DNA of 46,685 nucleotides from NCBI RefSeq assembly GCF_000143415.4, contig NW_003314473.1, forward strand, positions 1 through 46,685. Reading direction: 5' to 3'. Both the position numbers and the translations under genes were made by a program. The stretch comes from Selaginella moellendorffii. Lineage: Eukaryota; Plantae; Lycopodiophyta. Shown piece by piece: positions 1 through 19,716 of the stretch (position 1 is its first letter; each line of letters begins with the position of its first letter). Below the pieces are notes generated by a model, which had not been told where the DNA came from, did not search any database, and worked only from the letters and a program-made list of their open reading frames with translations.

Positions 1-1861
1 AAACCCTCCCTCTCCGGTGACCGCCCCCGATAGCGGGGGGACCGACGAAACGCGTGTCGGATCCGACCATGGCCGATGGGACGACAGCAGTCAACTATCC
101 CACATCCCCCACGATACCCTCCCTCCCGGCGATAGGGGGAGTGCCGCCAAATAGCCAAAACCCCCCTACCCCACCCACGCCAACAGAGTCAATGCCCCCC
201 GCAGCAAATACGAACTCTCCGGTGTTCCCCGTGCTGTTGGATGATACGATGGGCCAATCACCGGCATCATCCACATTAGCTGTAGCCGCCGCCGATTCTG
301 CCATGGGGCCGGCCATTCCGGCCACGACTCACCGCACTCGGGGGACCATGGCCGTCGAACATGCGACTGGGACGAAGGGATGATAGCTCGCCCCGAGCCC
401 GCCCCCCCTCCCTGTCCTTCCCTGTTTCCTTCCCTTTCCTCCCTCCAGCACGTCGGAGGGGCCGCGCCTTGTTTTACCCCCAGACGAGCCAAAGCACCCG
501 GTCGGCACCCCGCCCCGCATACCAGCAAGCAGGATTCGGCTTCGGGGTGGCACCGGCGGGTCGGGATGGGAGTGGCCTCTCCGGCCGCCGGGGGCTTGTG
601 CGGGGAAGACCGGGCGGCGGGCTTGCTGCGGGTGTGCTTTCTGGTCTCCGTCGCGCATGGGCTCGGACGCCCTTCCTTCGCCCAACACCCCGACCCGGGC
701 CCCACTCCCCGGGCACAGCCCACCCCTTCGGTCGGCAGGACAGGAGATGCACTCACCACCTCGATCCACCCCCGAGCCGTCACGGGCTGTGGACATGTGC
801 CTTCCGCTGCTGGCTGCTGGAAGAACACGCCGGCATCCACTCGAGTTGAGGGCGGCGCGGAGAGAGGAGGGGCTCCCGGCCATGCCGCAAGAAGGGGTGC
901 CGAAGAAGGTGGGCCTTCGGGCTTCTGGTTCGGGGTATACCAGGAAGAGGCTGGTTGGTGGGTATGGGGGAAGGGGGAGGGCGGGAGAAGGTGTCGGTCG
1001 ATGGTAGCGTCATCGTCGATTTGGGGTTTTTGGGACCGACCCACAAGCGGGGGGTCGGCTCGCTCCTTCCTCTCCCGGCCAACAAGCCCCGCCCATATCC
1101 TCTCCCGCACTGGTCTCGGCCGGATAGGGGGGGCCGCCCTCCCAGGGCCTTCCCGCCCATGTCTACCGCGCCGCGTAGACCCCCTTTTCTGGCCGATGCT
1201 GAGCCCGGCCTCGAACCCACCCCCGCCGGACACGGGTCCGTGTTCCGCCCCACCCTCTCCGGGGGGGAGAGCAAGCACTCCGGCTGATATGTCCCCCCCG
1301 ATCGGGGAAGGCCCACCCCGAAGAGGGCCACCCAGCAGGGGGAGGGGTGGCGGCCGTTGGTCATGTCGCCGTCGTGTGGCCCTCCTGCGCGGTTGGGTGT
1401 TCTATCCGCCCGCTTCCACTCTGTCCGGGTGCACCCCCTCAACCCGACCACTCCTCCCCGCACGCCAAACCCCTCCGCTCTCCCCATGCCACCCCAATCG
1501 ATCTCCCCGCTCCGGGGAGGATAGGCCGGGGGGATCGGGCCTACGCCGATCGTGCTCGAAGCAATCGTCGCGTAGAGTCTTCACCACGCGCTGCCTGGCC
1601 CGGGGAAAGAGAGCCGTATGACGTGCCCGATGTCACGCACGGCCCGCCCGGAGATCAGCCCAACCAGCCCGGACGGGTGGGCCATCATGCATGATGCTGG
1701 GGTCTGCTGGATCGTGCGGCCGGTGCGGGACGATTCGGCCTCTCCAAGCCCACCCGTCGACGAGGCCGATGGTCGTCCACCCCGACCGGCGGCCGACGAC
1801 CCAGCAGCCGCTGCTCCCCCTTCCCGCCCGTACCGGAGCGAGCGTAGCCCACCCACCCCAC
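1..1861 (+). other. 3' part of group II intron nad1i728g2 (5' part outside window); contains nad4L upstream of domain V
   Basis: Domain V GAGCCGTATGACGTGCCCGATGTCACGCACGGCCC at 1611-1645, long domain VI, 3' end ...CCACCCCAC at 1861 directly followed by the nad1 exon in phase 2 at the i728 position. Confidence 0.85.
81..383 (+). CDS. nad4L: NADH dehydrogenase subunit 4L (ACG start needs C-to-U editing; 100 aa)
   Basis: TESMPPAANTNSPVFPVLLDDTMGQSPA...AVAAADSAMGPAIPATTHRTRGTMAVEH...TKG* edits to IELMLLAVNMNFxVFSVLLDDMMGQLFA...AVAAADSAMGLAILVITYRIRGTMAVEY...MKG, the plant Nad4L pattern and length. Alternative in-frame ATG at 69. Confidence 0.95.
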   Translation, partial: TTAVNYPTSPTIPSLPAIGGVPPNSQNPPTPPTPTESMPPAANTNSPVFPVLLDDTMGQSPASSTLAVAAADSAMGPAIPATTHRTRGTMAVEHATGTKG

Positions 1862-2123
1862 CAGCCCACGCACATTGCCTCCATCAGGAGGTCGGCTGCC
1901 CGTCCATCCCCCTGGGTTGCGCCGACTCCCGCGAATCCCCCGCACCCGGTCCATTATGAAGGTCCCTCCGCCCTCGCCCGTACACACACGGGTCCGGGCC
2001 GCCTTTCCACGATACCGGCATGATCAATCAATGAGCCCGGGGCGGACGGTGTTCCCGCCTCCCCCACCAGCACGGGTAGTCCCTGTCCCCGGCGCACCAC
2101 CCGCCCTTGACCGGCTCGCCCAA
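1862..2123 (+). CDS. nad1: NADH dehydrogenase subunit 1, terminal exon (stop by CAA->UAA editing at 2121-2123)
   Basis: GGRLP...[32 protein letters not shown] edits to GGWLP...[32 protein letters not shown], the Nad1 C-terminal signature. Confidence 0.95.
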
Positions 2124-3550
2124 ACACCCCGACCGCCGATTCTCCCTCCAGCCCAAACACGCCCTCTGCTCTCGGCCCGGGTTTCTTCTTCCGTCGCGCG
2201 TGCACCCCCGTCCGCCGGACGACTCCCCAACCGGGTGGTCGGTGTGCCCGGGGTGGGTCGACCCCGACCGAAGCCCACCCTCTCCCGCGGCCGTCCCCCT
2301 GCCCCGTATCATGCCGGTGGTAGCGGTTTCCGTGCGTGATTGATCCACACCCCCGAAACGACCGCGGTGGTCTCGATCCGGCTTTGGGGGTTTGGGGGGA
2401 TGGCTGCCGGTCGATCGAGGAAAAACCAAGGAACGACGGACGATGTGCCGAGGGGGTCGGCCGAGATCCTCTGTGTGCAGGTTCTTCGAGAAGAATGCCC
2501 GTCCGTGGTCGACCCGACGGACGGGGAGATCATCGATCATCGCCCCCGGTCAGCGGCTGGCTATCCCGCTGACCGGTGGTTTCGCTGTCACTGCCGTCAG
2601 GGCATACCTCCGTCCCGAGTCGGAGTATACCACCCCGCGACTCTCTCTCCTCTCCCCATGCTACCGAGCGACGAGCTGCTGGGCCCGATGATCCGCTATC
2701 AGCCCAACGCCGGCCGCGGGCCGCCCACCCTCCTCGCCGACTCACGCCCCGCACATAACGCCCGGATCGAATCGGCATCATGACCATCGTCGGCTTTCGG
2801 TCGGGGCGCACCCTCACAACGGCGGAGGGCAAAGCAGCGACGGGCGGCTGCTCCTTCTTCTTCCTCCTGGGCGCACGGCGGGTCGGGGCTGGTCGTCGCT
2901 CCCTGGCGCGGGCGGTTGGAACCCACCCGGGGACACACCGTCTCTCTGGCATGACTGGTGCGGGTATGGGTGGGGCTGCTTGTTGGGGCCAGCCCAGCGC
3001 CTCTGCTCTCCACCCGGCCCAAACCCCCCGTCCCAGCATCGGGGAGGTTCATCGGTTGGGAGTCGATGCTGGAAGAAAGGCTGGGGCCGCCTTGGAACAC
3101 ACCAACCTTTTCCTCCGACGATTGATTGGGTGGTTTGGCTGCTCGTCGGCCAACGGGGATGGGGTGGAAGGCGCCGACGACCATGAACCCCGCCCCGGTC
3201 CGGCTCCCCCGGCCATGCCGCGGCGTATCGCCGTACCGAGATCATCGATGTCCCCGAACGAAGAGAGAGAAAACCCGTCCGGGGTGTCGGGGCGGTGGGG
3301 TTGTTGGTTCGATCCCCGGCCTAGCACCATAATCGAGGTGGTCGGAGGGCCGGGGCGGCCTGGACAGGGTGGGGGAAAGCGGGTGCTCAAACGGCGAACG
3401 AAACGGGTTTTAGGAGGGGCTCACGGCATCGGGCACACTGTCGTCCCACCGCCCGGCACACGTTCGGTGACGACCACTCGCTCCCCCCATGCCCGCGGGT
3501 GGGTTCTCCTCCCCTCCCCCTACCTGCAGCGGGTCTCGGCGCACGAGGAA

Positions 3551-3657
3551 GGAAAGGAAAGGAAAGGAAAGGAAAGGAAAGGAAAGGAAAGGAAAGGAAA
3601 GGAAAGGAAAGGAAAGGAAAGGAGAGGGCCGCCGCCGCCGCCGCCGCCGCCGCCGCC
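3551..3657. repeat. compound microsatellite (GGAAA)14 followed by (GCC)n
   Basis: Directly visible. Confidence 0.95.
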
Positions 3658-4061
3658 CCCCCTTTTCCTTGTTCGGGCACACCGGAGGGAGGAAAGAAAA
3701 CCGTCGACGTGGGCGGGGCCTGCTCTGTGTCCCGTCGTGGGCCGGGGCAGGAGGAGAGAGCAGCGTCCGACCGGTCTCCCGTAGTCACATGCATGGCCGG
3801 ATCACGTGCGCCCACGGCATGCGGGATCTGGGTCCGGCCAGGAGGGGATGGAGGAGCAGCAGCAGCAGCAGCGGGTGTCTTCTCCGATGATCCAAAACCA
3901 GCCCAGCAGTGAAGGCCCACGACGCGCCGCTGTGGCGGGCTCCACAGCAGGCAGACGGAGAGGGTGTCGATGTGCATGTGTAAATCAATCCATCATCCGC
4001 GCACCCGCCGCAGCCTCTGGAGATATCTCCGGTCGGGGGTGGTCTGCTGGGGTGGGCACCG

Positions 4062-4064
<3 letters not shown>

Positions 4065-4096
<32 letters not shown>
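4065..4096. repeat. (CT)n microsatellite
   Basis: Directly visible. Confidence 0.9.
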
Positions 4097-4100
<4 letters not shown>

Positions 4101-4387
4101 CGCTTTTGGGTGGTGTGTGCACCGGCGGGAAGAGCAGCAAGCTGGTGCGCTTGTTGGGCTGCTCGCTTTGCCCCGGTCGGGAAGCGCTTCTTCCTTCTTC
4201 CACACCGGGCGTCGTTTCGGCGGGTTCGGGGTGTATTATGCGGTGGTCGTCGTCGGGTGGGGATAGGGGTTTGGGGTGATGACCGACCACCCACCCAACC
4301 CCGGGCCAGGTGCCCCCGAGAACCAGCCTCAGGGAGAGAGAGGGCGGGGCCAGTGCACGGAGAGACCAACCACCGGGAGGCCGGTGA

Positions 4388-4388
<1 letters not shown>

Positions 4389-4418
<30 letters not shown>
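4389..4418. repeat. (GCT)10 microsatellite
   Basis: Directly visible. Confidence 0.9.
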
Positions 4419-4420
<2 letters not shown>

Positions 4421-7220
4421 TCACACCCGTGTGCACCACTGCTTTCGGGGGCCTCTCGCCGACCGAACCGCTCTCGGCTTTCTTCCCACCCCGACGCCCC
4501 TTTGTTGGGTGGTTTTGGTTGGGGCGTCAGCCCGCTGGCTGAACCGGTAGTAGGTTTGGTGGGAGGTGCACGACTGCTCTCCCCCGCCCCAACGCCCGAG
4601 CGGTGGTGTGCGGCACACTGTGCCCGAGTATGCGCCAGCCAGCAGGCTCGACCCGATATCGGGTTTGTTGAATCCGCTGAGGGCGACTCGCGCCCGCCGG
4701 TCGTGTCCGGGGGGTTTGCGGTCGATGGGGCGGTTTGGCCCCCCGAAGAGGCCCCATTCTTCCTTCTTCACCCACCCCAACCCCCGGACCCGGTTTCCGG
4801 GGGTTGACGGATAGGCCGAGCGAGAGAAACCCCGCCTGCCTCGAATCACTCTCCCCACCCGTCGTGCTCCGCCCCGGCGCCGGTCGACTGATGACTACTC
4901 GACGATCGCCGTTCCCGCCCCCCCTCTCTGGGCGTCTTTTGGTGGTTGGTCTCGCCTCCCCTATACCCACCACCATGAATCCCCTTTGACCTCCGCCCTG
5001 CTGGCTCTGTCCTGGACAGGGGCAGCAGCAGCAGCATCGACGAACGGGGGACATGCACACCGATCGGCCTTCGTTCGGCCCTTCCTCCGTCGTTTCGCCG
5101 TCCTCTCTCATGCTCCCTCCCTTTTCGGGCGGTGTGCACCCCGGCCGCCCACACTGCCCCGTCTCTCCCCGCCGGGAACAGCAGCCCACACCGCCCCCCG
5201 GCGGGGACGTCTCTCGTCCACTCGCCGGATCCGGCGGGCACTGGTCTGTTGGCATCCCCCAGAAAACCCAATACCCAACCCAAGCTACCGGCGGCCACCA
5301 CACCCCCACCCCCGATGATTGATCCTCGGTGTGTTCCGTCACGTCTCTTCGGCCTCTAAATCCCCCAACAACAAAACACAGACCACCGGTTTTCGGCGGG
5401 ACACACCCGGTCGGTCGTCCACCCCGACACGAACGACACCACCCTCAACCTCCCCGATCCCCGCTTCTCGTCGACCCGTTTCTTTCCCCATTATTCCCCC
5501 GGGGCGGGCAGTGCTCGCTCCGGCCGCCCCAACATCGCCGGCCGCTCGAAGAAGGCCGTCCGCCGCTCTCCGGCCGCCCCCCAACCGACGACCGGGCCGC
5601 CGCCATTTACACCCGCTGCTGCTGCGCCCCGGTACACCGGCCGCCGGGATGATATGGGCCGGGAAAAAGCGGGGGTTCGGCACCAACCGACAAGGGCCAG
5701 CACAGCCGCCCGGAGCGACCCCGGCGGTGCGTGTGCGGCGGGCCTCTCCCACCGACTGACTGGCGGGGGAGCGGTGGGAAGGGCGATCGGGTGTTCCTTC
5801 CGCCCGCGGGGTGAGGACCAACGAGAATGGGGGCGACGACGAGGAGCATATGGCCGGGGAGATAGGGGGGAGGCATCATCGGTCGGTCGGGGGTCTCTCG
5901 ACGGCCTCCCCACCTGCGGGATGCCGTGTTTTGGGTACACACGCGATCGGGGGGGTGGGATACCCCACCCCCGACAGTGGGCCGGCCCGGGCCCACTGCT
6001 GGGGCCGGGGAGAGCAGAGGGCCGGCGGCTTGCTTTCGGGGTGGAGCCGGCAAAGCACCGGCGGAGCTCCAGCACATAACACCGACCTTGTGGGGGTCGT
6101 CACAGATGATGGCCCGCACACTGTGCACCGCGTTCGGCGGGTGGAACGGAGGCCCGTCGTGGACACTGTCCCAGGACCCTGCTGGGTCGAGACAGGGGGA
6201 GGGGGCAGGGGGGAAAAAAGCCGTTTGGGCGGGGACTGCTTGTTGCTGGGTTTTTCCGCTGCTTCCCACACCGGGCCGGGTAGGTATACGCAGCAGAGAC
6301 AGGCTCGCTCGGCCGGGGTTCGCTTGTTGCCGCTTCTTCCCCAACCCCGCTGTTGCTGGCTCCAGACGGCTAGAGCGATCCCCCCCTTTGTTGCCGCCCA
6401 TCACCCGCCGCTTTCCCCCCCTTTTTTCCACCCCCTGTCGCTCTGCTGGGCCTCCCCGCTGTCGTCACCATCACCAAAACAACCCTCCCGCCGACCAATC
6501 GAACAGATATCGATGTTGTCGTCGGCCGGTGCGGGGTAGGAGGCAATAAGTGGCCCAACCCGGGAAAAACAACCCAAAACCGGACGACGGACACCCCGGT
6601 CGGCGGCCCCCCCATCCCCACCCGCACGCAGTGTGATTGACCCCGCCGCGTGCGTCGGCTCGGGACTGCTGATGACTACTGGTCCGACCGCGGAGAGGCA
6701 CGAGAGCGGTAGGGAATACTACGGGGAAAGCGATGCTCTCCCCCACTCGGGGTGCACGAGCGGAGGAAGAAAAAAGCGGAGAGAGCCGCCCACTCGCGGG
6801 TCTACTCGTCACACGGTCGGGTTTGGTGTTCGACGGTGCACCCAATTATTGGTTGGCCGTGTGGTCTCTTCGTTCTGGCCCGGCGGCCGCTATGGGGGCC
6901 GGCCCGCCGGGTGAACCCGCACCGGGGAGAGGTCATCAGCAGACACGGTGCCGTTTACGACCGTCACGGGGGTGGACGCACGACGGGCAGAGAGAGGCAG
7001 CTCTGGGCGCGGCGGTCGGGTCGCCTTTCCGATGGTGCAGAGCAGCGCGCCGGTTGGGTTGGGTGGTCCGCCGCTCTGGGAGAGAGACAGGGGGCTTTTT
7101 GGTTGGCTGGTAGTGGGTGTGTTTGCCCGGTCGGGGGAGGCGGGCCGCAGAAAGGGGTGGTGCATACCATCTCCATCCCCGCCCACGAAACCACAGAAGA
7201 CACACCCGACCGGACAACAG

Positions 7221-9893
7221 ATGACATACTCCTTTCTGCTCCTGATTCGAACACCCGGAATGCTCATACCACCACCAGGAATCGGGGCTTCTTCTGAGGG
7301 TCGGCCCGACCCGACCCGCGCACCGCGTAGACCCCGAAGCCGCGGCTACCCCGCCCGAGAGCACACCCCATTCCGTAGTATGGCCGTGGTCGAGGAGCGG
7401 GGGGTGGGTGGAGGCCGCCCATCCGCATACTCTTCCCGGGCCGCGCCTTGTCCTCCCCTTCACCCTTCCTGTGGTGCGCGGGTCGGGTCGAGACCCCTCA
7501 CGGTGAGCAAGGCGGGTGGGTCCATGGTCGAGGAGGCGATGGAGACCGCGGCCGACCCCATTGAGGGTTTCTCTCGGACCAAGGAACCTCCCATGCATGC
7601 ATCGGGGCGTCGCCCCGTTCGATGCCCTTACTCCGGCCCGAGATCGATCATCGGCGGATGGAGTGGAACATACCGGTCCGCCCATGGGGCCACTGGGAGG
7701 TTGGGCGCATACGACCCCGAAGACACACCCGCGGATGCGGCTCCAGAGGCCACGATCCCCAAACCCCCTTATTTGCACCACGACCCCCAACCCCTGGCCC
7801 TGATTCGCCGCTCCCGCAGATCCCAAGCCATGATGCCCTTCGCCCGGGAATCCCCCTCCCCTGGAGCGGGTCCGGGAACGGGTTCACCACTCCTCGTACG
7901 CCAGACGCTTACACACGCCCCGGAATGGGCTATCGGTGGCCGGATGAATGACCCCCGGCAGGGGGGTGTGAGCAGCAAGCCCAGAGATATCCCGCAGCAC
8001 CCACGTGGACACCCCGAGCGGATGCTCCTCCGTCGGGCTACTTTCCCCAATGGGGAGGGAGGAGCACGGACGGGGGGGCGGGAGTGCCGGCGGGGTTACC
8101 CAATGGGGCGGCTATCGGCGGGGCTGGTTTCGGAGCGGGGGGTGGACAAGCCGCCCTCCGCGACAGGGTATTCTGCCTATGCCCATGCTTTCCAGGCCGC
8201 CCCCCCTGGGATCGGTCCATCGTCGTGGCACGATCGGCGGGCCTGGCACACGAGGAGCCCTCCTCGGCCCCGAGCAGCGGACGGGGGGGCGGCTTCGATG
8301 GCCCGTGTCGGCCTCATCAGCTCGGGTTTGGGTCCAACACGGCGGATGGGCTTTCCTTCTGCCGCCAGCCCCTTGGCCGGGGGACGACGCGATGGCTGCT
8401 CGATCCCCATCATGCACGGCCACGATGACCCGTACGAATGGGGTCTCGTGCACGTGCCGCGAATCCCGGGTTGTCATGCCCGAAACGCCGACGAATCACC
8501 CCCCTCCCTCCCCGCGTCCTTGGGGGAAGCAGCCGGAGGAACACACGAATGGATGGCCCCGATCCGAGACAATCTGCCGCACTCCCCACGATCAGACCCG
8601 AACCCATCGGTCGGAGCCTTGGCTTCGATCACGGGGTTGGATGCCGGGCGGACGGTCGCACCAGGGGGGACAGCCACGCGCGGAGTAGCCAGTCATCGAC
8701 CGTCGCGTAACCCAGAGAGGAGTCGATCGGCCCACCGCCGGGTCGTCCATCTTTCCCCCCCGACTCCCGCCGGGCGGGCTCCCCGTCGATATGCTCTGTT
8801 TCCGCTCCGTGCTGCAGATGCCGGTGAGCCTGGCTCGACATGTATGCTCTTCGGCCCTCGGCTCCCCGTACCCCCAGGCCGCCGCCCTCCTTTTCCCCGA
8901 CCCTCCTCACAAGCGCTCCTCCCTCCCGCTCGCCCGGTCGGCGGCCCCACCATCCCCAGTGCCGGCGGGGAGTGGAAGGGGGGCGGCCCACCCGGATGCT
9001 CCTCGATCCCGCTCCTCGACCCCCATAGAAACCACGATCAATCGATCTCCATCCATGCCGGACCAAAACCCTCCCGGTCCAACAAAACCCACTCCGACGA
9101 GATGCAAGCCGCCCCCCCTCGATTGGGTTCGAACCACCCGCCGGGAAGACGAACACCCGGGCTGATGCTCCCAGCGTTCGATCCCGAGGCTGCCCAGCTG
9201 CATGCGGGGTGGAAGGCGCCTGGGCCAGGTGTACCGGCGGGGTGGTGTGGAGGTGGGTTCGGGTCATCGGTCCGCTATTGGGCACGTCAGTCGGCCCCGA
9301 CCGGTCACTCGGTTGGGCGGAGGGGAAGGAGGCGGATCCAGCGAGCGATACGGCTCGCGCTCGCCCCGACGGATAATATTCCCCACCGGCCGAGCGGGCG
9401 GGGGCTTCTGGTGCGGCGAGTGCGCTCGGATCGATATGTCGGGGTTTTGGGGGGATGGACCGGGGAGAGCAATAGGCCTATGCCCGGGTGCGCTCGTGCC
9501 GCCCATCCATTGCCCCCCAATCCCCGGCCAACCCCTGCCGGCCGTTCGACCAATCCTGTCGACGCATGCATGGTCAGTCGGTTCACCGGGGCGGGGACAG
9601 GTGCGACCGGCCACCATGGCTCGCGCGACAATCTCCCCCAAGTCCGACGAATGGTGGATCATCATACCCGGCGGCCGGGGTCGGCCTCCCCGGCGAGGAA
9701 GCACCGCCCATGCCCGCCGTCCGCCCACCATCCCACCCCGAGCCATCCCAGTGCTGCCCGTGCGGGGGATGATCGAGACCGACAGGCGGGCGGCCCCCCT
9801 CCGCTGCTCGCCGCCCTGCGCCCGGGCACGAAAGAGCTGTTTCCGACCAGCACCGAACCCCGTGAACCCATCGTCGATCCATGGCCCCTCTAA
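7221..9893 (+). CDS. matR: group II intron maturase (matR-like; degenerate RT domain plus domain X), 890 aa, apparently free-standing
   Basis: Collinear motifs in one open frame: RPLTVSKAGGSMVEEAM (7491; RT2-like); HARNADE (8475; edits to YV/ARNADE, cf. YxDD); TVAPGGTATRGV...RNPERSRSAHRR (cf. MatR TVEFLGTVIREV...RELEKRLRVKHR); domain X APTDNIPHRPSGRGLL...PRPTPAGRSTN...GHHGSRDNLPQVRRMVDHHTRRP...PARKH...LFPTSTEP (cf. APIKKILRRLRDRGII...YYRCRDNLYQVRTIVDHQIRWS...LAHKH...FPNSIEL). The maturase call is firm; matR orthology is inferred. Confidence 0.8.
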   Translation: MTYSFLLLIRTPGMLIPPPGIGASSEGRPDPTRAPRRPRSRGYPAREHTPFRSMAVVEERGVGGGRPSAYSSRAAPCPPLHPSCGARVGSRPLTVSKAGGSMVEEAMETAADPIEGFSRTKEPPMHASGRRPVRCPYSGPRSIIGGWSGTYRSAHGATGRLGAYDPEDTPADAAPEATIPKPPYLHHDPQPLALIRRSRRSQAMMPFARESPSPGAGPGTGSPLLVRQTLTHAPEWAIGGRMNDPRQGGVSSKPRDIPQHPRGHPERMLLRRATFPNGEGGARTGGRECRRGYPMGRLSAGLVSERGVDKPPSATGYSAYAHAFQAAPPGIGPSSWHDRRAWHTRSPPRPRAADGGAASMARVGLISSGLGPTRRMGFPSAASPLAGGRRDGCSIPIMHGHDDPYEWGLVHVPRIPGCHARNADESPPSLPASLGEAAGGTHEWMAPIRDNLPHSPRSDPNPSVGALASITGLDAGRTVAPGGTATRGVASHRPSRNPERSRSAHRRVVHLSPPTPAGRAPRRYALFPLRAADAGEPGSTCMLFGPRLPVPPGRRPPFPRPSSQALLPPARPVGGPTIPSAGGEWKGGGPPGCSSIPLLDPHRNHDQSISIHAGPKPSRSNKTHSDEMQAAPPRLGSNHPPGRRTPGLMLPAFDPEAAQLHAGWKAPGPGVPAGWCGGGFGSSVRYWARQSAPTGHSVGRRGRRRIQRAIRLALAPTDNIPHRPSGRGLLVRRVRSDRYVGVLGGWTGESNRPMPGCARAAHPLPPNPRPTPAGRSTNPVDACMVSRFTGAGTGATGHHGSRDNLPQVRRMVDHHTRRPGSASPARKHRPCPPSAHHPTPSHPSAARAGDDRDRQAGGPPPLLAALRPGTKELFPTSTEPREPIVDPWPL

Positions 9894-10210
9894 CAACGAG
9901 GAAGGCCACGCACAGAGGGGCGACCCGTCGTACTACGCATATGCCCCCGCCGCATCGACCACGAATCCCGCCGCATGGGCCGCCGCATGGTCGTCCCCGC
10001 CTCTGGCCGCGTGCCCCGCCTCGGAGTCTATTGCCCAAAGCCGAGCGAGGATGCCCGGCCCTCCCCACCATTCGGTCGGGGGGGGGGATCCGCCCCAACC
10101 AGCTTCTTCTTCCGTCGTCCGGGAGCAGCAGCAGCAGATAGCCGCCCCGACAGAGCGACAGGCCCCCACCCACTGGGAGCTGCTGGAGAGGGTGTGCGCC
10201 GGCCCGGAAA

Positions 10211-10340
10211 GGAGGAGGAGGAGGAGGAGGAGGAGGAGGCGGCGGGGGATGGGCTGCTCAGTCTCGTGTGGCGTGCAGAGCTGGGAGTGCGCCGGGCGGG
10301 TCGGGTCGGGTCGGGTCGGGTCGGGTCGGGTCGGGTCGGG
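10211..10340. repeat. (GGA)n and (GGTCG)n microsatellites
   Basis: Directly visible. Confidence 0.9.
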
Positions 10341-11725
10341 GGAGAGTGATCCTGCGCGACAGAGGCGGAGCAGCGGCTGGGTCCGGCCAGGAAGAGAGTG
10401 GCTCAGAGCGGGTCGCATGCCCCCCCTTCCTGCCCCGACCGGCGGCACATACACCCCCGGCCGCTGCTGGCTGGGAGTGATGCCCCCCTCGAGCCCATTC
10501 CGTCCGCGGAGGGGCTTCGCGGGTGTTTGCTGTCCGCGGAGCCGGGCCCGGGGCGTTTTGCGCATCGATCGCCGATCCGCCCACGGGGGGCTCGACGACC
10601 GGGGGGATCGATCATCCGCCGCTCCCCGCCGAACACCCCAACAAACCGCCCGCCTTCTCCCGGCCCGGCGGTTTTCCCTCCCTTCTTCTTCTTCTTCTTC
10701 TTCTTCCCGTGTGTCGACAAAACAACCCACTACTAATAACTCCCCAGTTAGCAGTGGTTCTCTCTCTGCTGTGCACCCGGTGGCAGCACGGTGTGCCCGC
10801 CCACCAGCCAAAAGGGCGAGAGGGTGTGCGGTCTCACTGCTTGCTTGCACCGACTCCGGGTGTGCCGTGTCGATCTGTCGGCGGGGAGCGGGTCAGCACA
10901 CTACTGGACTGGAAACCACCGGTCCGTCTGTGGATCGTCGTCGGCAGCAGAGTGGATGGGGGGGACCCACCTCCGGGCCAGCGGCTGTTGTGGGCGGGTT
11001 CGGTGGGCTCGACGGTCGGAAGAGGGCGACCGCGGAGAGGCGAGGGCGGGGAGTGGCTCGATGTTGGCCGGGAGTGGTCGAAACCACACTGCCCAGGACC
11101 CGTCGGTGGAGGGCGCTCCTCGGGCAAGAGAATATGGGGGCTTCGTGGGTGACGGGATGCTTGATCGGGGTATGAGTGGGTGTGGGGTATGGGTTGGGCT
11201 GTCCCCGCCGCTCTTTACTGCTGTGTGTAGTGGCCCGGTGCGGTCATCGGTCGAGTCGGGACTCGGCGGCCTCCCCGCTCGTCGTCGTCGTCGTCGTCGT
11301 CGGGTGGGTTCATCAGCCGTCGTGGTCACCTCTGACGCACTGTCGATGACCCCAAACCCGGAGCACCGTGCGGCACACCTCCCCCAGCCACGGACAAAGG
11401 GGGGAAGGGCATGCTCTTGTGGGCTGTTGTTGTCCCAAGGGCATGGTGGTGTCGGCAGTGCGGGGTGGGACACACCCGCTCCGCCCCCCCTTCCACCCCC
11501 CGCTGGCCCGGGCAGCAAGTTCCACCGGGTAAACCCGACCAGAATGGGCTCACGCGGCACGGTGTCGGGCCGTTTCCCAAGCCACGCCGCGCCCAGAGAG
11601 CTCGGAGAGGACGACCGACGGGGGGGCGTCTTCCTCGGGCCTCCGCCGGGCAGCACATACACCGGATATGGGTCCGCTTCGGGGCGGGGTCGGGGCCAGC
11701 TGTCGAACCCAACCCCGGGATGGGG

Positions 11726-11765
11726 GAAGAAGAAGAAGAAGAAGAAGAAGAAGAAGAAGAAGAAG
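11726..11765. repeat. (GAA)n microsatellite
   Basis: Directly visible. Confidence 0.9.
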
Positions 11766-12296
11766 CGGGTATCGGCGGGAAGGGTCGAGCACCGAGCCGG
11801 GGCATTCGGCGGGCGGAGGGGCATGGGCGGTGTGTCGGGGGAGTGGAGTGCCGGCGGGAGCATGAGCGGCGGAAAGCGGCCCAGCCTCGAACGGGGATCT
11901 CACTGACTGGGACAGGGGCCCCCCTGCGTCGTGATGGCGGGCCAGGGGGCGCTTGGGCTGTTGGGATGATGAGAGCGGCGGGGACCGTACCGTCGTTCGC
12001 AGTGGGCTGCTCCGTGCCGGCAAAAACCACTACATCTCCCCCCGCCCGGAGACACACGATATCTCTGTCCTCTGCCCAACCCCATCCGACGGTCGGCGAG
12101 GGGTGTGTCGCCGGGGTTAGTGGATGATGGGGTTTTGGACGACCCCGCCGATAACACATTTTGGCCGATCCTCCACAGCGGATGGCGATCGATCGGGGGT
12201 TGGGGGGGCTGTGGCCGAGGAGCCGGCTCCGACACCAATGTTCACTGTGGAGCCACACACGAAATGACGACCCCCGAGCGAGCCAAAGCCCACTCC

Positions 12297-12800
12297 ACGC
12301 CTCAACCGGATCAATTCACGCATTCGACGCAATCAGTCCGGTTACGTGTGTTCCATCGTACGCCGGATGTCCCACCCCTTCATGATGGATCACCCCCACT
12401 GAGCCGAAGACCCAAACCACGATCCCCGCTCTCCGCCGGGGTTGTCTTCCGCGCTGGGGTGGGACAGCACGAGGCCTCTTGGGGTGGGGTGGTCATCGAG
12501 GGCGTGCAGAGGGGCGTGGGCTCCCTGTCCCCGAGTGAAGCCAGAGCGTGCCAGCGGTCGGCAGGGAAAAGCCCGGCGGGTCGTCCACGGACGAAGAGGA
12601 CGTATGGGGCCCTACCCGGAGAGATAGGCGCATCCCCCATGCTCGCTCGGGCAGTACCGGCTCTCACGTCCGGGTATGCCGAGCCTGCTGCGGAAGGCGC
12701 CACCCCGCGTGACAGCGGATGGCCGGCCGAGACCAGGAAAAAGACCAATCGACCCGGCGCCCGGAGGGTCCTTCTTCCCTCCACCCGCACGACGGCATGA
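12297..12800 (+). CDS. atp8: ATP synthase subunit 8 (ACG start edited)
   Basis: TPQPDQFTHSTQSVRLRVFH...DGSPPLSRRPKPR edits to MPQLDQFTYLTQFVWLCVFY...DGLPxLSRRLKLR. The C-terminal half is poorly conserved, so the end is taken from the genomic TGA. Confidence 0.9.
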   Translation, partial: TPQPDQFTHSTQSVRLRVFHRTPDVPPLHDGSPPLSRRPKPRSPLSAGVVFRAGVGQHEASWGGVVIEGVQRGVGSLSPSEARACQRSAGKSPAGRPRTKRTYGALPGEIGASPMLARAVPALTSGYAEPAAEGATPRDSGWPAETRKKTNRPGARRVLLPSTRTTA

Positions 12801-12854
12801 TGGCCCAGCACGGGTCAATAGCGAACACAGCACGGGGATCGCACGAACAACAGT

Positions 12855-13376
12855 ACGATACTTCCCGGGGTGCCCCCAAGCCTTGCTCCTGTTCCGGGGG
12901 GATTGGCCGTCCGGAGTGGTGCCCCTAATCCAGTCCCAGCCGCTCCCCCGCCCCCGCCGGTCCCCGTCCCACGCCCAGGATCACCGGTTCGGTTAGATCC
13001 GGATTCCCTTGCCATGATACCCCCGGCGGTTCACGCAGGAGCGATGGCTGCCCCTTCTTCGCCCGCAGCGATGATGCGTACTTTTCGCCGAGAGGGCCGT
13101 GAACATGAGGTCGCGCCCAGGCACACCGAACCTGTCGTCGGACCTCTCTCCCCGTCGCACCTCCGGCCAGTGCTCGAGCACTCCCCGCGCCCCCCGACCC
13201 CCTCCGCGTATCCGATTGGGGAACACCGTGGACACGTGACGAGTGCGACCCATTCGGACACATCGGGGACTCTGCCTCATACGCACGTCCCGCCGTCGTC
13301 CATTGGTTCTGGTCCAATCCCACCCGCCGCTCCGCCCGGGGCAACCGCACCCACGGTGCACACACCCGGGGATTGA
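12855..13376 (+). CDS. nad6: NADH dehydrogenase subunit 6 (ACG start edited; 173 aa)
   Basis: PNPV...DSLAMIPPAVHAGAMAAPSSPAAMM edits to DFLAMILLVVYVGAMAVLFLFVVMM; SDTSGTLPHTH...IPPAAPPGATAPTVH corresponds to LETLGNLLYTY...ILLVAMIGAIVLTMH. Confidence 0.92.
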   Translation, partial: TILPGVPPSLAPVPGGLAVRSGAPNPVPAAPPPPPVPVPRPGSPVRLDPDSLAMIPPAVHAGAMAAPSSPAAMMRTFRREGREHEVAPRHTEPVVGPLSPSHLRPVLEHSPRPPTPSAYPIGEHRGHVTSATHSDTSGTLPHTHVPPSSIGSGPIPPAAPPGATAPTVHTPGD

Positions 13377-15616: not shown

Positions 15617-18600
15617 TACGCCCCCCGAGCACAAGCCATCATGCCCGCCCTCTCCCGCCCTTTCCGCCCCACTCCTCCAGTCCGGTCGCTTCCCACTCCC
15701 CGCTCTCCCCCGCCCATCACCCGAAACCACCCGCTCTGCTGCGTGCCGTCCCGGGCGCCGGGGCCTGCTGGTTGACCCGCCGGCACTGTGAGCGAGAGAG
15801 ATTGGTGGGTCGTCGGTTGCCTGCCCTCGCCGTGATCGGGGACATGGCTCTTTTCGGTGTATCGATATCGGTATGGCTTGCAGCAGCCGGGACCAGGCTC
15901 ACTGTCTTCTCCCCGATCCAGGGGTGGTACGTGCCGACCGAACCGCCGACCGACCACCACCCATCGGGGGGCATAGAATGTGGGTTGTAGAGCCCTCTAG
16001 GGGCGGCGGCCCGTCTGCCCACCCCCAAGACCCCGGCGGGCATACCCACCCCCCAATGCCTCTCGCGGATCGCCTGCGGATGCTCCTCTTTCGGGTCTGG
16101 CCTGAACCCCGGCGGCACGACCGATGACCAGAAATCGCTCCACCCGTGGCGGGATCGGGCATGCGCGGGCGGAGAGAGCATGTGCTGGGCCGGGTTGGGC
16201 TGGGGAGTCGTCCAACAACGCACGAGCACGCAAAACCACCCCCAGCCAGTATGACGCGACAGAGGAGCAGACCAGTCCCGCTCTCACACCCCAAGCCAAC
16301 AGTGCTGGGTGGGCAGCGCACGACATCATCGCGGATCGGGGGGAGCGACAGTCGTCGATACGGACGGCAGGGGATAGGGGGGGAGTGGTTGGGGAAGAAA
16401 GTGCGTGGGCGGGGGTCTCCGGCGCTCGGTGAAATCACTGCTGGTGCTTTTTGGGGTGATGGGTTTTGGGGGGCTTCGATACAACAAGGCCCGGATCCGA
16501 CGCCCGATGATGGGCCGGTCGATCTCCCGAAACCGGGCACTAAACCCCCAATGAGCACCGGCCTGCTGAACCGCCGCGATCGTGTGCCTTCCCCCAAGCC
16601 GCTTCCCCCGCCCGATCCTCCCCGTTCCTCTCCAAACCCTCTCCCAGTCCCGACCGACCCGGCGTCGGGAGATCGTGTCTCGCCTCTCTTCCTGGGAGAG
16701 GCTCCGGCGCATCGGGGCATGCTCTGGTGGGCGGCCCACAGCAGACCGAACCGCCTCCGCCGAACCCCAAACACGGGCCACCCCGGCCATGGCCATGCGG
16801 AGAGGAACGACGAGGCGATCCGGAGCACCTTTCGTCGCGACGAGACCCACTCCGACCGCGCTGACTCCGCGACTGCCCACTGCAGTGTGCTTTCCGCCCC
16901 CGGTCCGAGCGACCACGGCCCGTGCGTGGCCGCCGCGCCCTCTCCCCGGTCGAGCATCACCGGCGATGATCCGACCCCCGCTGCTGCCGCCTCCGGTGTG
17001 GGTGGAGCGGGAGCATGTCGACCCGGGCCCAACAACCTCTGCACGGGCGAGACCGGGCATCCGGATCGGGGTCTCTTCGGCGGTCTGCTCCCTGCGGACG
17101 GGCATGCCCCTTTGGCGGCCCTCCCTCTCCCCGCTCGACCGCTCCCCATCCGCTCCTGTCTGTTGGCCGGAACAACCTGCCGCCCCGGCCCCGACGAACG
17201 ACCACGCACGATCCCCCGGAAAGGGGGCAGACCAGATCGAAGAAGGGTCTGCTGCCCGGGGGGCGGGGGCATGTCCAAAACCCTGGTGGTTGGGGGGCGC
17301 ACGTTCGCCGGCTCTTCTCCCCGCCGAACCACCCTCCCTTTTCCCTCCACACCGGACGGAGCGCACGGGCCGTGTCGTGCACCATGTGCGCTGTTCGACC
17401 AGGGTTTTTGGCTGACCGACGCACACCACCCCGCGACATACGATCGAGCGCACCGCCGATATCCACCACCGGCCAACCAAAAGCCGCATGATCCACGTGT
17501 TCTCGGGTTCGTCGGAGGAAGGAGGGGGCGGCCCCGGAGAGGGATGTCCCCGCCGGAAGAATACCACTCCCCGCCCTTCCCCCAAAACCCGATCCGACGG
17601 CCCGCCGCACGCGTCCCAACCGCCTGGGTGGGGTGTTGCCCGGTTGCCGCCCCGCCCGTGTCCCGGGCCCAAGGCAGCACGAGCGTCGTCCCGGCATGCG
17701 CTCTGGTGACGACCACTATCGCGCCGGTCCACTGCTCGATGACCCAAACCGCTCCGAGGGAGGAGGCGTGTTCCCGACCGAGAGGGGGCATGGCGGATAC
17801 ACCCCGAGCAGCGGGTTGTCCTTCTTCCACCGTGCCGAGGAACCAGCAAGCAGATACCGGGTCGGTCCTCCCTGGGCGGGTGATCACCCCGGGCACCGGA
17901 GCATCCGGCACGCGACATGGCCGCACACGGGGAGTGGGGCAAGCAGGAGGGGTGGGGGCTGTGGGGAGGAGGCCGCGGCGCCCGCCTCCCCGTCTGGGGT
18001 TGACACAGCACGCAGACCCACAGCGTCTCGCCAACCCTCCGGTAGAGACCACTCACCCCGGGCCCGGCCGAGCGTTGGGCTGCGGCTCTCCCCGTGGCGC
18101 ATGGGGCTGGGAGAGGTGCCGGAGAGGTGTGCCCCGGTGGTCGGCGGGAAGGGTCGACACTGACGACTGGAAGGGGGGCGGTGCGGGAGGGAAAGGGAGA
18201 GGAGAAGGGCAGCACTCCCCACTTCCGGGCCAACACCTGTTATCGATATCGATCGCGCTCTGTTGAGGTTCGGGGATCGGATACCGAGGGCGTGGGCGGC
18301 CTTCACACTTGGTGGGGGTCGTCAGAAAGTGGGCAGGGTGGCGGCCGATGGGCGTACGTGTCGTCCCGGCTCCGGGGGCTGTGCCGGGGTCGGGGCGGCT
18401 GGTCGCGGGGGGGGCTGGGGGTGTCGTCACTACTCACGAACCCTGCTGGCGCACACGCCCGCCGGGAGTGGTTCTCCGGGCCGGCCCGGAGAGGAACGCG
18501 ATGATCGGGGCGACCACCCCCACGACGGAGGGAGGACAGAGTGAAAAGGAGGGGCATGATGGCATGGCCCATGGGGAGGCCAAGCCCGGCCCGGGGAGAG

Positions 18601-19475: not shown

Positions 19476-19716
19476 CCCACCCGATGATGCCAGAAATCGT
19501 CCCGAGACAAGACCTCATCCTGTTCCCACATCACCCACCACCCCCGATTCGGAAGTCACCTCCTCCCCTCCCTGGGCCATCTCCCCCAAGTGGATCGATC
19601 TGCTCGGATCCCGGTCCATGATCGTGCCCTCCCCGATACCGACCATAGGGTCCTTCCATGAACGGAGACAGGGGGCGCCAGATCGGCACTCATCCCCGAT
19701 CGACCGGGGGGCTTGA
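19476..19716 (+). CDS. nad3: NADH dehydrogenase subunit 3, exon 3
   Basis: PPDDARNRPETRPHPVPTSPTTPDSEVTSSPPWA...IPTIGSFHERRQGAPDR edits to PFDDARNRFEIRFYLVSILFIIxDLEVTFFxPWA...ILTIGFFYEWRQGALDW. Spliced total 369 nt, in frame. Confidence 0.95.

Follow-up and report, generated by a model that had tools for sequence, protein, structure and literature searches.

A transcribed and edited MatR-like open reading frame outside nad1 in the mitochondrial DNA of Selaginella moellendorffii

We analysed a 46,685-nucleotide (nt) stretch of Selaginella moellendorffii DNA (RefSeq assembly GCF_000143415.4, contig NW_003314473.1, positions 1 to 46,685 of the forward strand; the window). Its gene order is nad4L (within the intron nad1i728g2), nad1 exon 5, repeat R9, a long open reading frame (the ORF), atp8, nad6 and nad3, in agreement with the parts '…nad1-R9…' and 'R9-R6a-atp8-nad6-nad3' of the published map (Hecht et al. 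2011, PMC5654404). The ORF, which occupies 6915 to 9893 on the plus strand and is the longest open frame in the window, is the subject of this work. A first-pass annotation made from the letters alone had read it as a free-standing maturase related to matR. Hecht et al. describe this mitochondrial DNA (mtDNA) as holding 20 genes and 37 introns, mark nad1i728g2 as being without an ORF, and list an ORF in that intron for a hornwort and seed plants only (PMC5654404). The maturase belonging to atp9i87g2 is missing in S. moellendorffii as well. No mitochondrial maturase is listed for S. moellendorffii in the publications consulted, including that 20-gene list (PMC5654404); the first-pass annotation had noted that Selaginella mitogenomes are usually described without intact maturases.

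An open frame with homology to MatR

The ORF and its recognisable parts, including reverse transcriptase (RT) blocks, are as follows (aa, amino acids).

6915..9893, plus strand: whole open frame, 992 codons from stop to stop, with TAA at 9891-9893; 890 codons from the ATG at 7221
7758..8000, plus strand: N-terminal block rich in edits, at the place expected for RT1-3 (IPKP...); weak homology
8424..8756, plus strand: RT5-RT7 block, aa 402-512; BLASTP against Ginkgo MatR P0125 331-427, E 6e-7; hmmsearch and hhalign agree
8469..8510, plus strand: RT5 motif, genomic GCHARNADESPPSL, edited to GCYARNADELLFFF; ICYARYADDLLLGI in MatR
9360..9710, plus strand: domain X (maturase/thumb), aa 714-830, interrupted by 33 inserted aa; found by hmmsearch, BLASTP and hhalign

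Between 7273 and 9890 each of the other five frames contains 6 to 14 stops, and the frame of the ORF contains none in 873 codons (P ~2e-6). Dinucleotide-preserving shuffles of the same region gave a mean of 13.1 stops per frame, and in none of 2000 shuffles was any of the six frames free of stops. The uninterrupted run of 890 codons noticed at first reading is thus real and lies within a longer frame. So is its freedom from microsatellites, which abound both in R9 upstream and in the spacer downstream; coding sequence in this mtDNA is microsatellite-free (PMC5654404). We found no second copy of the ORF elsewhere in the window.

Standard searches with the unedited sequence were blank. Pfam returned 0 families at E<=10 for the ORF and its pieces, phmmer found no match among 1.84 billion representative proteins or among PDB sequences, and the ESM Atlas gave low recognition, its sole matches being unrelated actinobacterial fragments. 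The ORF would indeed be missed by annotation pipelines, as had been predicted. Little can be read into these blanks: Pfam equally fails on the window's unedited atp8, a genuine gene with 35 published edits.

Comparisons with MatR itself follow. Reference loci were obtained by scanning metagenome contigs with a degenerate, C/T-tolerant back-translation of ten domain X residues (a motif used as a lead only), which yielded 98 loci with full-length ORFs of ~650-780 aa. A protein search with a conifer-like MatR returned proteins named at source as maturase R or maturase-related (Ginkgo, Gnetum, Amborella and others), and the best 120 matches were all seed-plant MatR. The identity of the references as MatR rests on these source names and on Pfam, where Ginkgo MatR passed both models (RVT_1 at 2-143 and Intron_maturas2 at 565-662).

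With hmmsearch, a profile of 46 distinct seed-plant MatR sequences scored the unedited ORF at 18.8 bits and the ORF carrying 22 observed edits at 22.4 bits (E 2e-9, single sequence). None of the window's 49 other open frames with 300 codons or more scored above -3.3 bits. The matches are colinear: residues 411-500 of the ORF align with MatR 314-394 (RT5-7), and residues 768-830 with MatR 561-623 (domain X). BLASTP of the unedited ORF against Ginkgo MatR gave two colinear segments at E 6e-7 each, and hhalign joined RT5-7 and domain X in one alignment over ORF residues 415-830 (probability 84%, E 7e-6), stretching domain X back to APTDNIPHRPSGRGLLVRR, aligned with APIKKILRRLRDRGIISRR. Identity in the best blocks is ~33%.

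Domain X is the strongest part of the match. Its core, DNL.QVR..VD..(I)R(W)....(L)A.KH., corresponds to a MatR-specific motif; the hmmsearch domain scores 17.5 bits (i-E 6e-8), and the BLASTP segment (E 6e-7) falls on Ginkgo MatR 589-650, within the Pfam Intron_maturas2 region at 565-662. Against codon-shuffled sequences, the null used for domain X and RT5-7 (profile Viterbi), domain X reached z = 16-19. Comparison with non-MatR maturases covered bacterial and archaeal intron-encoded proteins (IEPs). A profile of 15 diverse proteins of this kind gave no signal on the ORF (45 bits edit-aware, against a null of 46±7.5). Bacterial IEPs match the MatR profile in RT1-5 only and never in the domain X columns, so, judged against these proteins, what the ORF shares with MatR is lineage-specific and not a generic likeness among maturases.

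Many departures of the ORF from MatR had been described as correctable by C-to-U editing. We confirmed this: HH, T-R-R, P-A-R-K-H and I-P-H-R-P of the ORF sit exactly at MatR YY, I-R-W, L-A-H-K-H and I-L-R-R-L, with a single C>T apiece. Some of the MatR genomic loci, seemingly conifer-like, likewise have unedited HH, IRR and TP; the angiosperm residues at these places are YY, IRW and TL.

For the RT5-7 part the z score rose from 2.1 in the unedited sequence to 3.8 with the real edits and 4.6 when any C could be read as U. In the RT5 motif, edits were seen at 8475, 8497, 8500-8504, 8506 and 8508. An edit-aware global alignment had placed RT5 at APRRYALFPL (aa 515-527); we rejected this position, since aa 417-430 is backed by BLASTP, hmmsearch, hhalign and the observed edits. 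The series RT0-RT7 plus domain X, announced in order by the first-pass annotation, holds for RT5-7 and X, which are colinear with MatR in BLASTP and hhalign; RT0-4 are not demonstrable.

The composition of the window invites a simpler account, namely a chance open frame in a GC-rich, stop-poor spacer, with motif pareidolia. G+C content is 68% across the window, and long open frames are commonplace because stops are scarce (~1.1% of codons in every frame): other frames reach 823, 717, 712 and 669 codons, several thus exceeding 650, and some overlap on both strands. The blank results from Pfam, phmmer, PDB and the Atlas would fit as well. Against this stand significant colinear MatR matches by three methods, judged against 49 control frames and shuffles, and editing in a coding pattern (below). 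We regard a chance origin as having next to no probability; it is already refuted by the MatR matches, and the homology of the ORF to MatR is essentially certain.

Among the other long frames, those at 9166-11175 (plus strand) and 15899-18266 (both strands) have 637-717 codons and overlap one another or cross microsatellites. They match neither the MatR nor the bacterial maturase profile and look like by-products of the stop-poor composition.

Position outside nad1 and a start codon from R9

The features that define the surroundings of the ORF are given below.

3549..7272, plus strand: copy of repeat R9, which opens at (AAGGA)15.8 and ends inside nad1 exon 1; presumed donor of the 5' leader and start codon
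7221..7272, plus strand: opening of nad1 (start codon, first 17 codons), read in the same frame as the maturase body; the limit of homology is indistinct, reaching up to ~7292
69..383, plus strand: nad4L, an open frame inside nad1i728g2; the peptide PPTPPTPT, quoted by Hecht et al. (PMC5654404), lies at nt 162
1817..2122, plus strand: nad1 exon 5, the last exon; nhmmer with seed-plant matR 3' flanks, E 9e-18 at 1853-2122, and exon-start comparison
12297..12800, plus strand: atp8, whose start codon is made from ACG by editing; TPQPDQFTH for MPQLDQFTY; positive control

The matR gene normally lies in domain IV of nad1i728g2. Here that site is occupied by nad4L, and the ORF begins ~5.1 kb past nad1 exon 5, behind R9. 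The location outside nad1, with nad4L inside the intron, is therefore as first described. That matR was displaced while nad4L took over the intron site would be a historical reading of this arrangement.

The ATG at 7221 does not belong to the maturase by descent. Past 7272, reads and contigs of three RNA runs depart from the window and continue, edited and in the frame of this ATG, as LLLGIAFLVL, which we take to be the N-terminus of Nad1. The microsatellite (AAGGA)15.8 at 3549-3627 corresponds to the start of R9, which is described as opening with an AAAGG15 microsatellite and as 'extending into nad1 exon 1' (PMC5654404). Because the transcripts continue as nad1 after 7272 and R9 is published as reaching into nad1 exon 1, the ATG, like the 17 codons after it, is that of nad1 in a second copy of R9. 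The ORF is therefore a chimera, nad1-start::matR, and falls short of a clean stand-alone gene. In this one respect the statement that no upstream exon is present was incorrect. The R9 copy may have supplied promoter and leader to the ORF, and the published order R9-R6a-atp8 suggests that the body of the ORF corresponds to the 'intergenic' repeat R6a of the map.

Sequence variation was seen around this start. Contigs of run X3, which is labelled as another organism, have an ACA inserted at 7213, directly before the ATG, and show 9 differences and 3 gaps relative to the window over 7164-7469; at 8302-8727 they do not differ from it. Low-copy trinucleotide variability among isolates has been described (PMC5654404) and fits the X3 variation upstream of the ATG. 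Downstream of the ORF, X1 and X3 contigs leave or enter the window at 10423, 10545 and 10585, as do raw reads of X23 at 10585; these positions are probably breakpoints or the end of the repeat that holds the ORF. Beyond 10585 the contigs continue in AT-richer sequence that resembles edited coding sequence (CTCTTTCGCAATTGCTCCAATGCTCATGAC) and is perhaps the start of another gene in an alternative arrangement.

An ORF in frame with an upstream exon fragment (here nad1 codons 1-17) is what many intron ORFs look like, and the ORF could still be intron-borne, in domain IV of an unrecognised or fragmented group II intron, either trans-splicing or fossil, as proposed for Welwitschia matR. Rfam Intron_gpII gave no match in the window (gathering threshold or E<=10), and its blank downstream of the ORF means little because Rfam is blind to Selaginella domain V, including that of the window's own nad1i728g2. 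The other evidence argues against an intron. The upstream 'exon' is just the part of nad1 exon 1 carried by R9, and in the real nad1 the exon runs on. There were no splice joints over 6901-12900 in four RNA runs, at low depth. In nhmmer searches, 2.5 kb flanks of seed-plant nad1i728 found exon 5 alone (1853-2122) and nothing beside the ORF, and seed-plant matR 5' flanks gave nothing credible in the window. All 37 published introns are placed elsewhere (PMC5654404). We consider an intron-borne ORF improbable. The description as a stand-alone maturase stands in so far as the ORF lies outside nad1 and neither joints nor nad1i728-type 3' parts were seen; its nad1-derived start does not fit that description.

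For the resident intron, folding placed a domain V-like hairpin at ~1764-1794, directly upstream of nad1 exon 5. Its two stems are rich in G+C, and where a GNRA tetraloop is usual it carries a loop of 7 nt (UCCACCC). The unedited nad3 peptide PTSPTTP quoted by Hecht et al. (PMC5654404) was found at 19525, and atp8 begins 2.4 kb downstream of the ORF. Together with the nad4L peptide, the R9 microsatellite, the atp8 start and nad1 exon 5, the nad3 peptide marks the window as S. moellendorffii mtDNA.

Transcripts and C-to-U editing

RNA data came from a single survey of four runs over 6901-12900. In two stranded raw-read runs, every read on the ORF had its first mate on the minus strand, which corresponds to sense RNA (a handful of reads). 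Contigs of run X1 differed from the window at 78 positions, all 78 of them C>T on the plus strand. The atp8 control had a depth of 260-357 and 18 changes in 473 nt. On the ORF, contig depth was ~8-15, with the following changes.

7257-7673: 3 C>T changes
7694-7991: 10 C>T changes
8112-8597: 14 C>T changes
8898-9381: 2 C>T changes
9710-10109: 7 C>T changes

The ORF contigs were thus edited at 36 of 776 C (~2.1 kb), compared with 0 of 374 C in the spacer contig 10556-11715 (1,160 nt) of equal depth (p 7e-7). This spacer, which is rich in microsatellites (AGG, CGGGT, CTT, TCG, GAA), provides an internal control for editing.

Site-level analysis covers the 22 ORF edits among the sites listed; 50 more sites are unlisted. 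Although C is evenly distributed over the codon positions of the ORF, 13 of the 22 edits fall on second positions, 7 on first and 2 on third. Twenty are nonsynonymous, two are silent (both within multiply edited codons) and none creates a stop (p 0.002). No such bias appears when these sites are read in either of the other two frames. CAA and CAG codons at 7788, 7824, 7902 and 7959 remain unedited 2-4 nt from edited cytidines, so that nearby editing spares the C's whose change would yield a stop. The amino acid changes are of the usual kinds (P>L, S>F, H>Y, R>C, T>I/M). Ten edits in 7768-7921 are all nonsynonymous. Some edits bring back MatR residues, as in CHARNADESPPS to CYARNADELLFF; a single edit changes H to Y in CYAR, and further edits change S-P-P to L-L-F in ADDLLL. 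The edit at 8560 was also present in one raw read of a second run. The RNA check proposed with the first-pass annotation thus yielded sense transcripts with C>U changes in a coding pattern.

Several observations weigh against a working gene. The depth on the ORF equals that of the unedited spacer and lies 25-30 times below that of atp8; read-through or precursor RNA could account for the ORF signal. X3 contigs show no editing over 8302-8727, the editing data come mainly from the contigs of one run, and editing of domain X is not visible because 50 sites are unlisted. The protein is rich in Pro, Arg, Gly and Ala and extremely divergent, and its frame holds 36 CGA, CAA or CAG codons, potential stops upon editing. 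RT1-4 are not detectable: on MatR columns 1-150, where bacterial IEPs score 20-60 bits, z stood at 0.9 without edits, rose to 1.4 with those observed and came to 3.9 only when every possible edit was allowed. Finally, the catalytic YADD is NADE in the ORF, both in the DNA and after the observed edits, so the protein is at best a maturase only.

The low depth, the unedited X3 contigs and the loss of RT1-4 and YADD also speak for a transcribed fossil. On this account a matR remnant would persist in repeat DNA after its function had moved to nuclear maturases, of which seven are reported in S. moellendorffii (PMC3927076); it would ride in the atp8-nad6-nad3 leader and be edited because old sites and their pentatricopeptide repeat (PPR) factors persist. 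Its open frame would owe something to a stop-poor genome in which other frames of 650-820 codons occur. A fossil accounts poorly for 873 codons free of stops next to frames with 6-14 (0/2000 shuffles), for edits distributed 20:2:0 (nonsynonymous:silent:stop) in exactly the frame of the ORF while sparing adjacent CAA and CAG codons, for the clustering of edits in conserved blocks with none in the spacer, and for the lack of microsatellites, unlike the surrounding non-coding repeat DNA. It is the main rival reading, though the less probable one.

We consider it likely that the frame has been maintained and that its RNA is edited as coding sequence. On balance we favour the view that the ORF is a real, unannotated mitochondrial gene of S. 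moellendorffii, encoding a functional, free-standing, RT-dead maturase derived from matR. The predicted protein would, to judge from its family, act in trans as a maturase lacking RT activity.

A model for the ORF and its relatives

In the model that we propose, the ORF descends from matR and would have left its intron; it now lies 5.1 kb past the final exon of nad1, within what the published map treats as intergenic repeat. Its maturase body is fused in frame to a second copy of the nad1 leader, start and opening 17 codons, which R9 carries, and expression would probably proceed from nad1-type 5' signals in that repeat. Sense transcription occurs at a low level, and the mRNA is edited at sites that change amino acids, partly toward the MatR consensus. 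The predicted protein retains RT5-7 (palm) and domain X (thumb/maturase) and has lost recognisable RT1-4 and YADD. It would not be expected to carry out reverse transcription; it may bind group II intron RNA and, acting in trans, aid the folding and splicing of several of the 35 mitochondrial group II introns.

The closest likeness is to seed-plant MatR. The two share colinear RT5-7 and domain X, with the lineage-specific motif around DNLYQVRTIVDYQIRW....LAHKHK, and the lack of an endonuclease domain; both are encoded in the mitochondrion, near nad1 and on its strand. Conifer-like MatR is also matched in its need for C-to-U editing, which concerns positions of the same types (HH to YY, R to W, P to L). 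Unlike seed-plant MatR, the ORF lies outside domain IV of nad1i728g2, starts on a codon taken from nad1, and has ~180 extra residues before the first alignable one and ~100 between RT7 and X. It also lacks recognisable RT1-4, has NADE for YADD, and is only ~33% identical in the best blocks.

A free-standing matR as such is already known, and is not new to this ORF. It occurs in Geraniaceae and Viscum album, where its survival has been read as pointing to roles other than the splicing of its own intron, and Pelargonium matR has moved to the nucleus (PMC5174742). Like the ORF on our reading, these genes are mitochondrial, lie outside a functional host intron and are transcribed and edited. In Geraniaceae and Viscum, however, the host intron or host gene has been lost and matR is well conserved (PMC5174742), whereas in Selaginella the host intron persists with another gene inside it and, as described by Hecht et al. 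2011 (PMC5654404), splices; the maturase itself is a highly degenerate chimera. Liverworts also have mitochondrial maturase ORFs without a host intron; these are described as belonging to another, F01-related family (PMC10012718).

The domain content of the ORF resembles that of chloroplast MatK, encoded in the trnK intron: RT0-4 are degenerate or absent, RT5-7 and domain X are kept, and RT activity is not expected. MatK acts as a general splicing factor for several introns. It differs from the ORF in lineage and organelle and is still intron-borne. In architecture the ORF recalls the chimeric mitochondrial ORFs of the cytoplasmic male sterility (CMS) type, which arise by repeat-mediated recombination. 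These take their 5' leader, start and opening codons from a respiratory gene, a part played here by nad1 by way of R9, and read on in frame into sequence unrelated to it; unlike in those, the downstream part here is an old gene with homologues and not novel sequence.

The mtDNA of S. moellendorffii is the textbook example of a 'gene-poorest, intron-richest' plant mitogenome, to which an intact, edited matR-type frame would add a gene. If our reading is correct, Selaginella joins the plants with a matR-type gene and provides a natural case of a maturase set apart from a host intron that itself continues to splice. It would follow that, in hyper-edited organelles, entire genes can escape homology pipelines when the translations searched are unedited. 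By taking its leader and start codon from a recombination repeat, the ORF would also tie repeat-driven rearrangement to gene expression. More tentatively, the ORF may count as the 21st gene of this species and its sole mitochondrion-encoded maturase: a matR orthologue that escaped its intron, ceded the site to nad4L and was long kept as an RT-dead, heavily edited general splicing factor, made as a Nad1(1-17)-MatR fusion whose promoter and start codon are duplicates of those of nad1 within a recombination repeat. Should this be so, matR would be placed in lycophytes, and a 'repeat' of the most recombinogenic plant mitogenome would be a gene.

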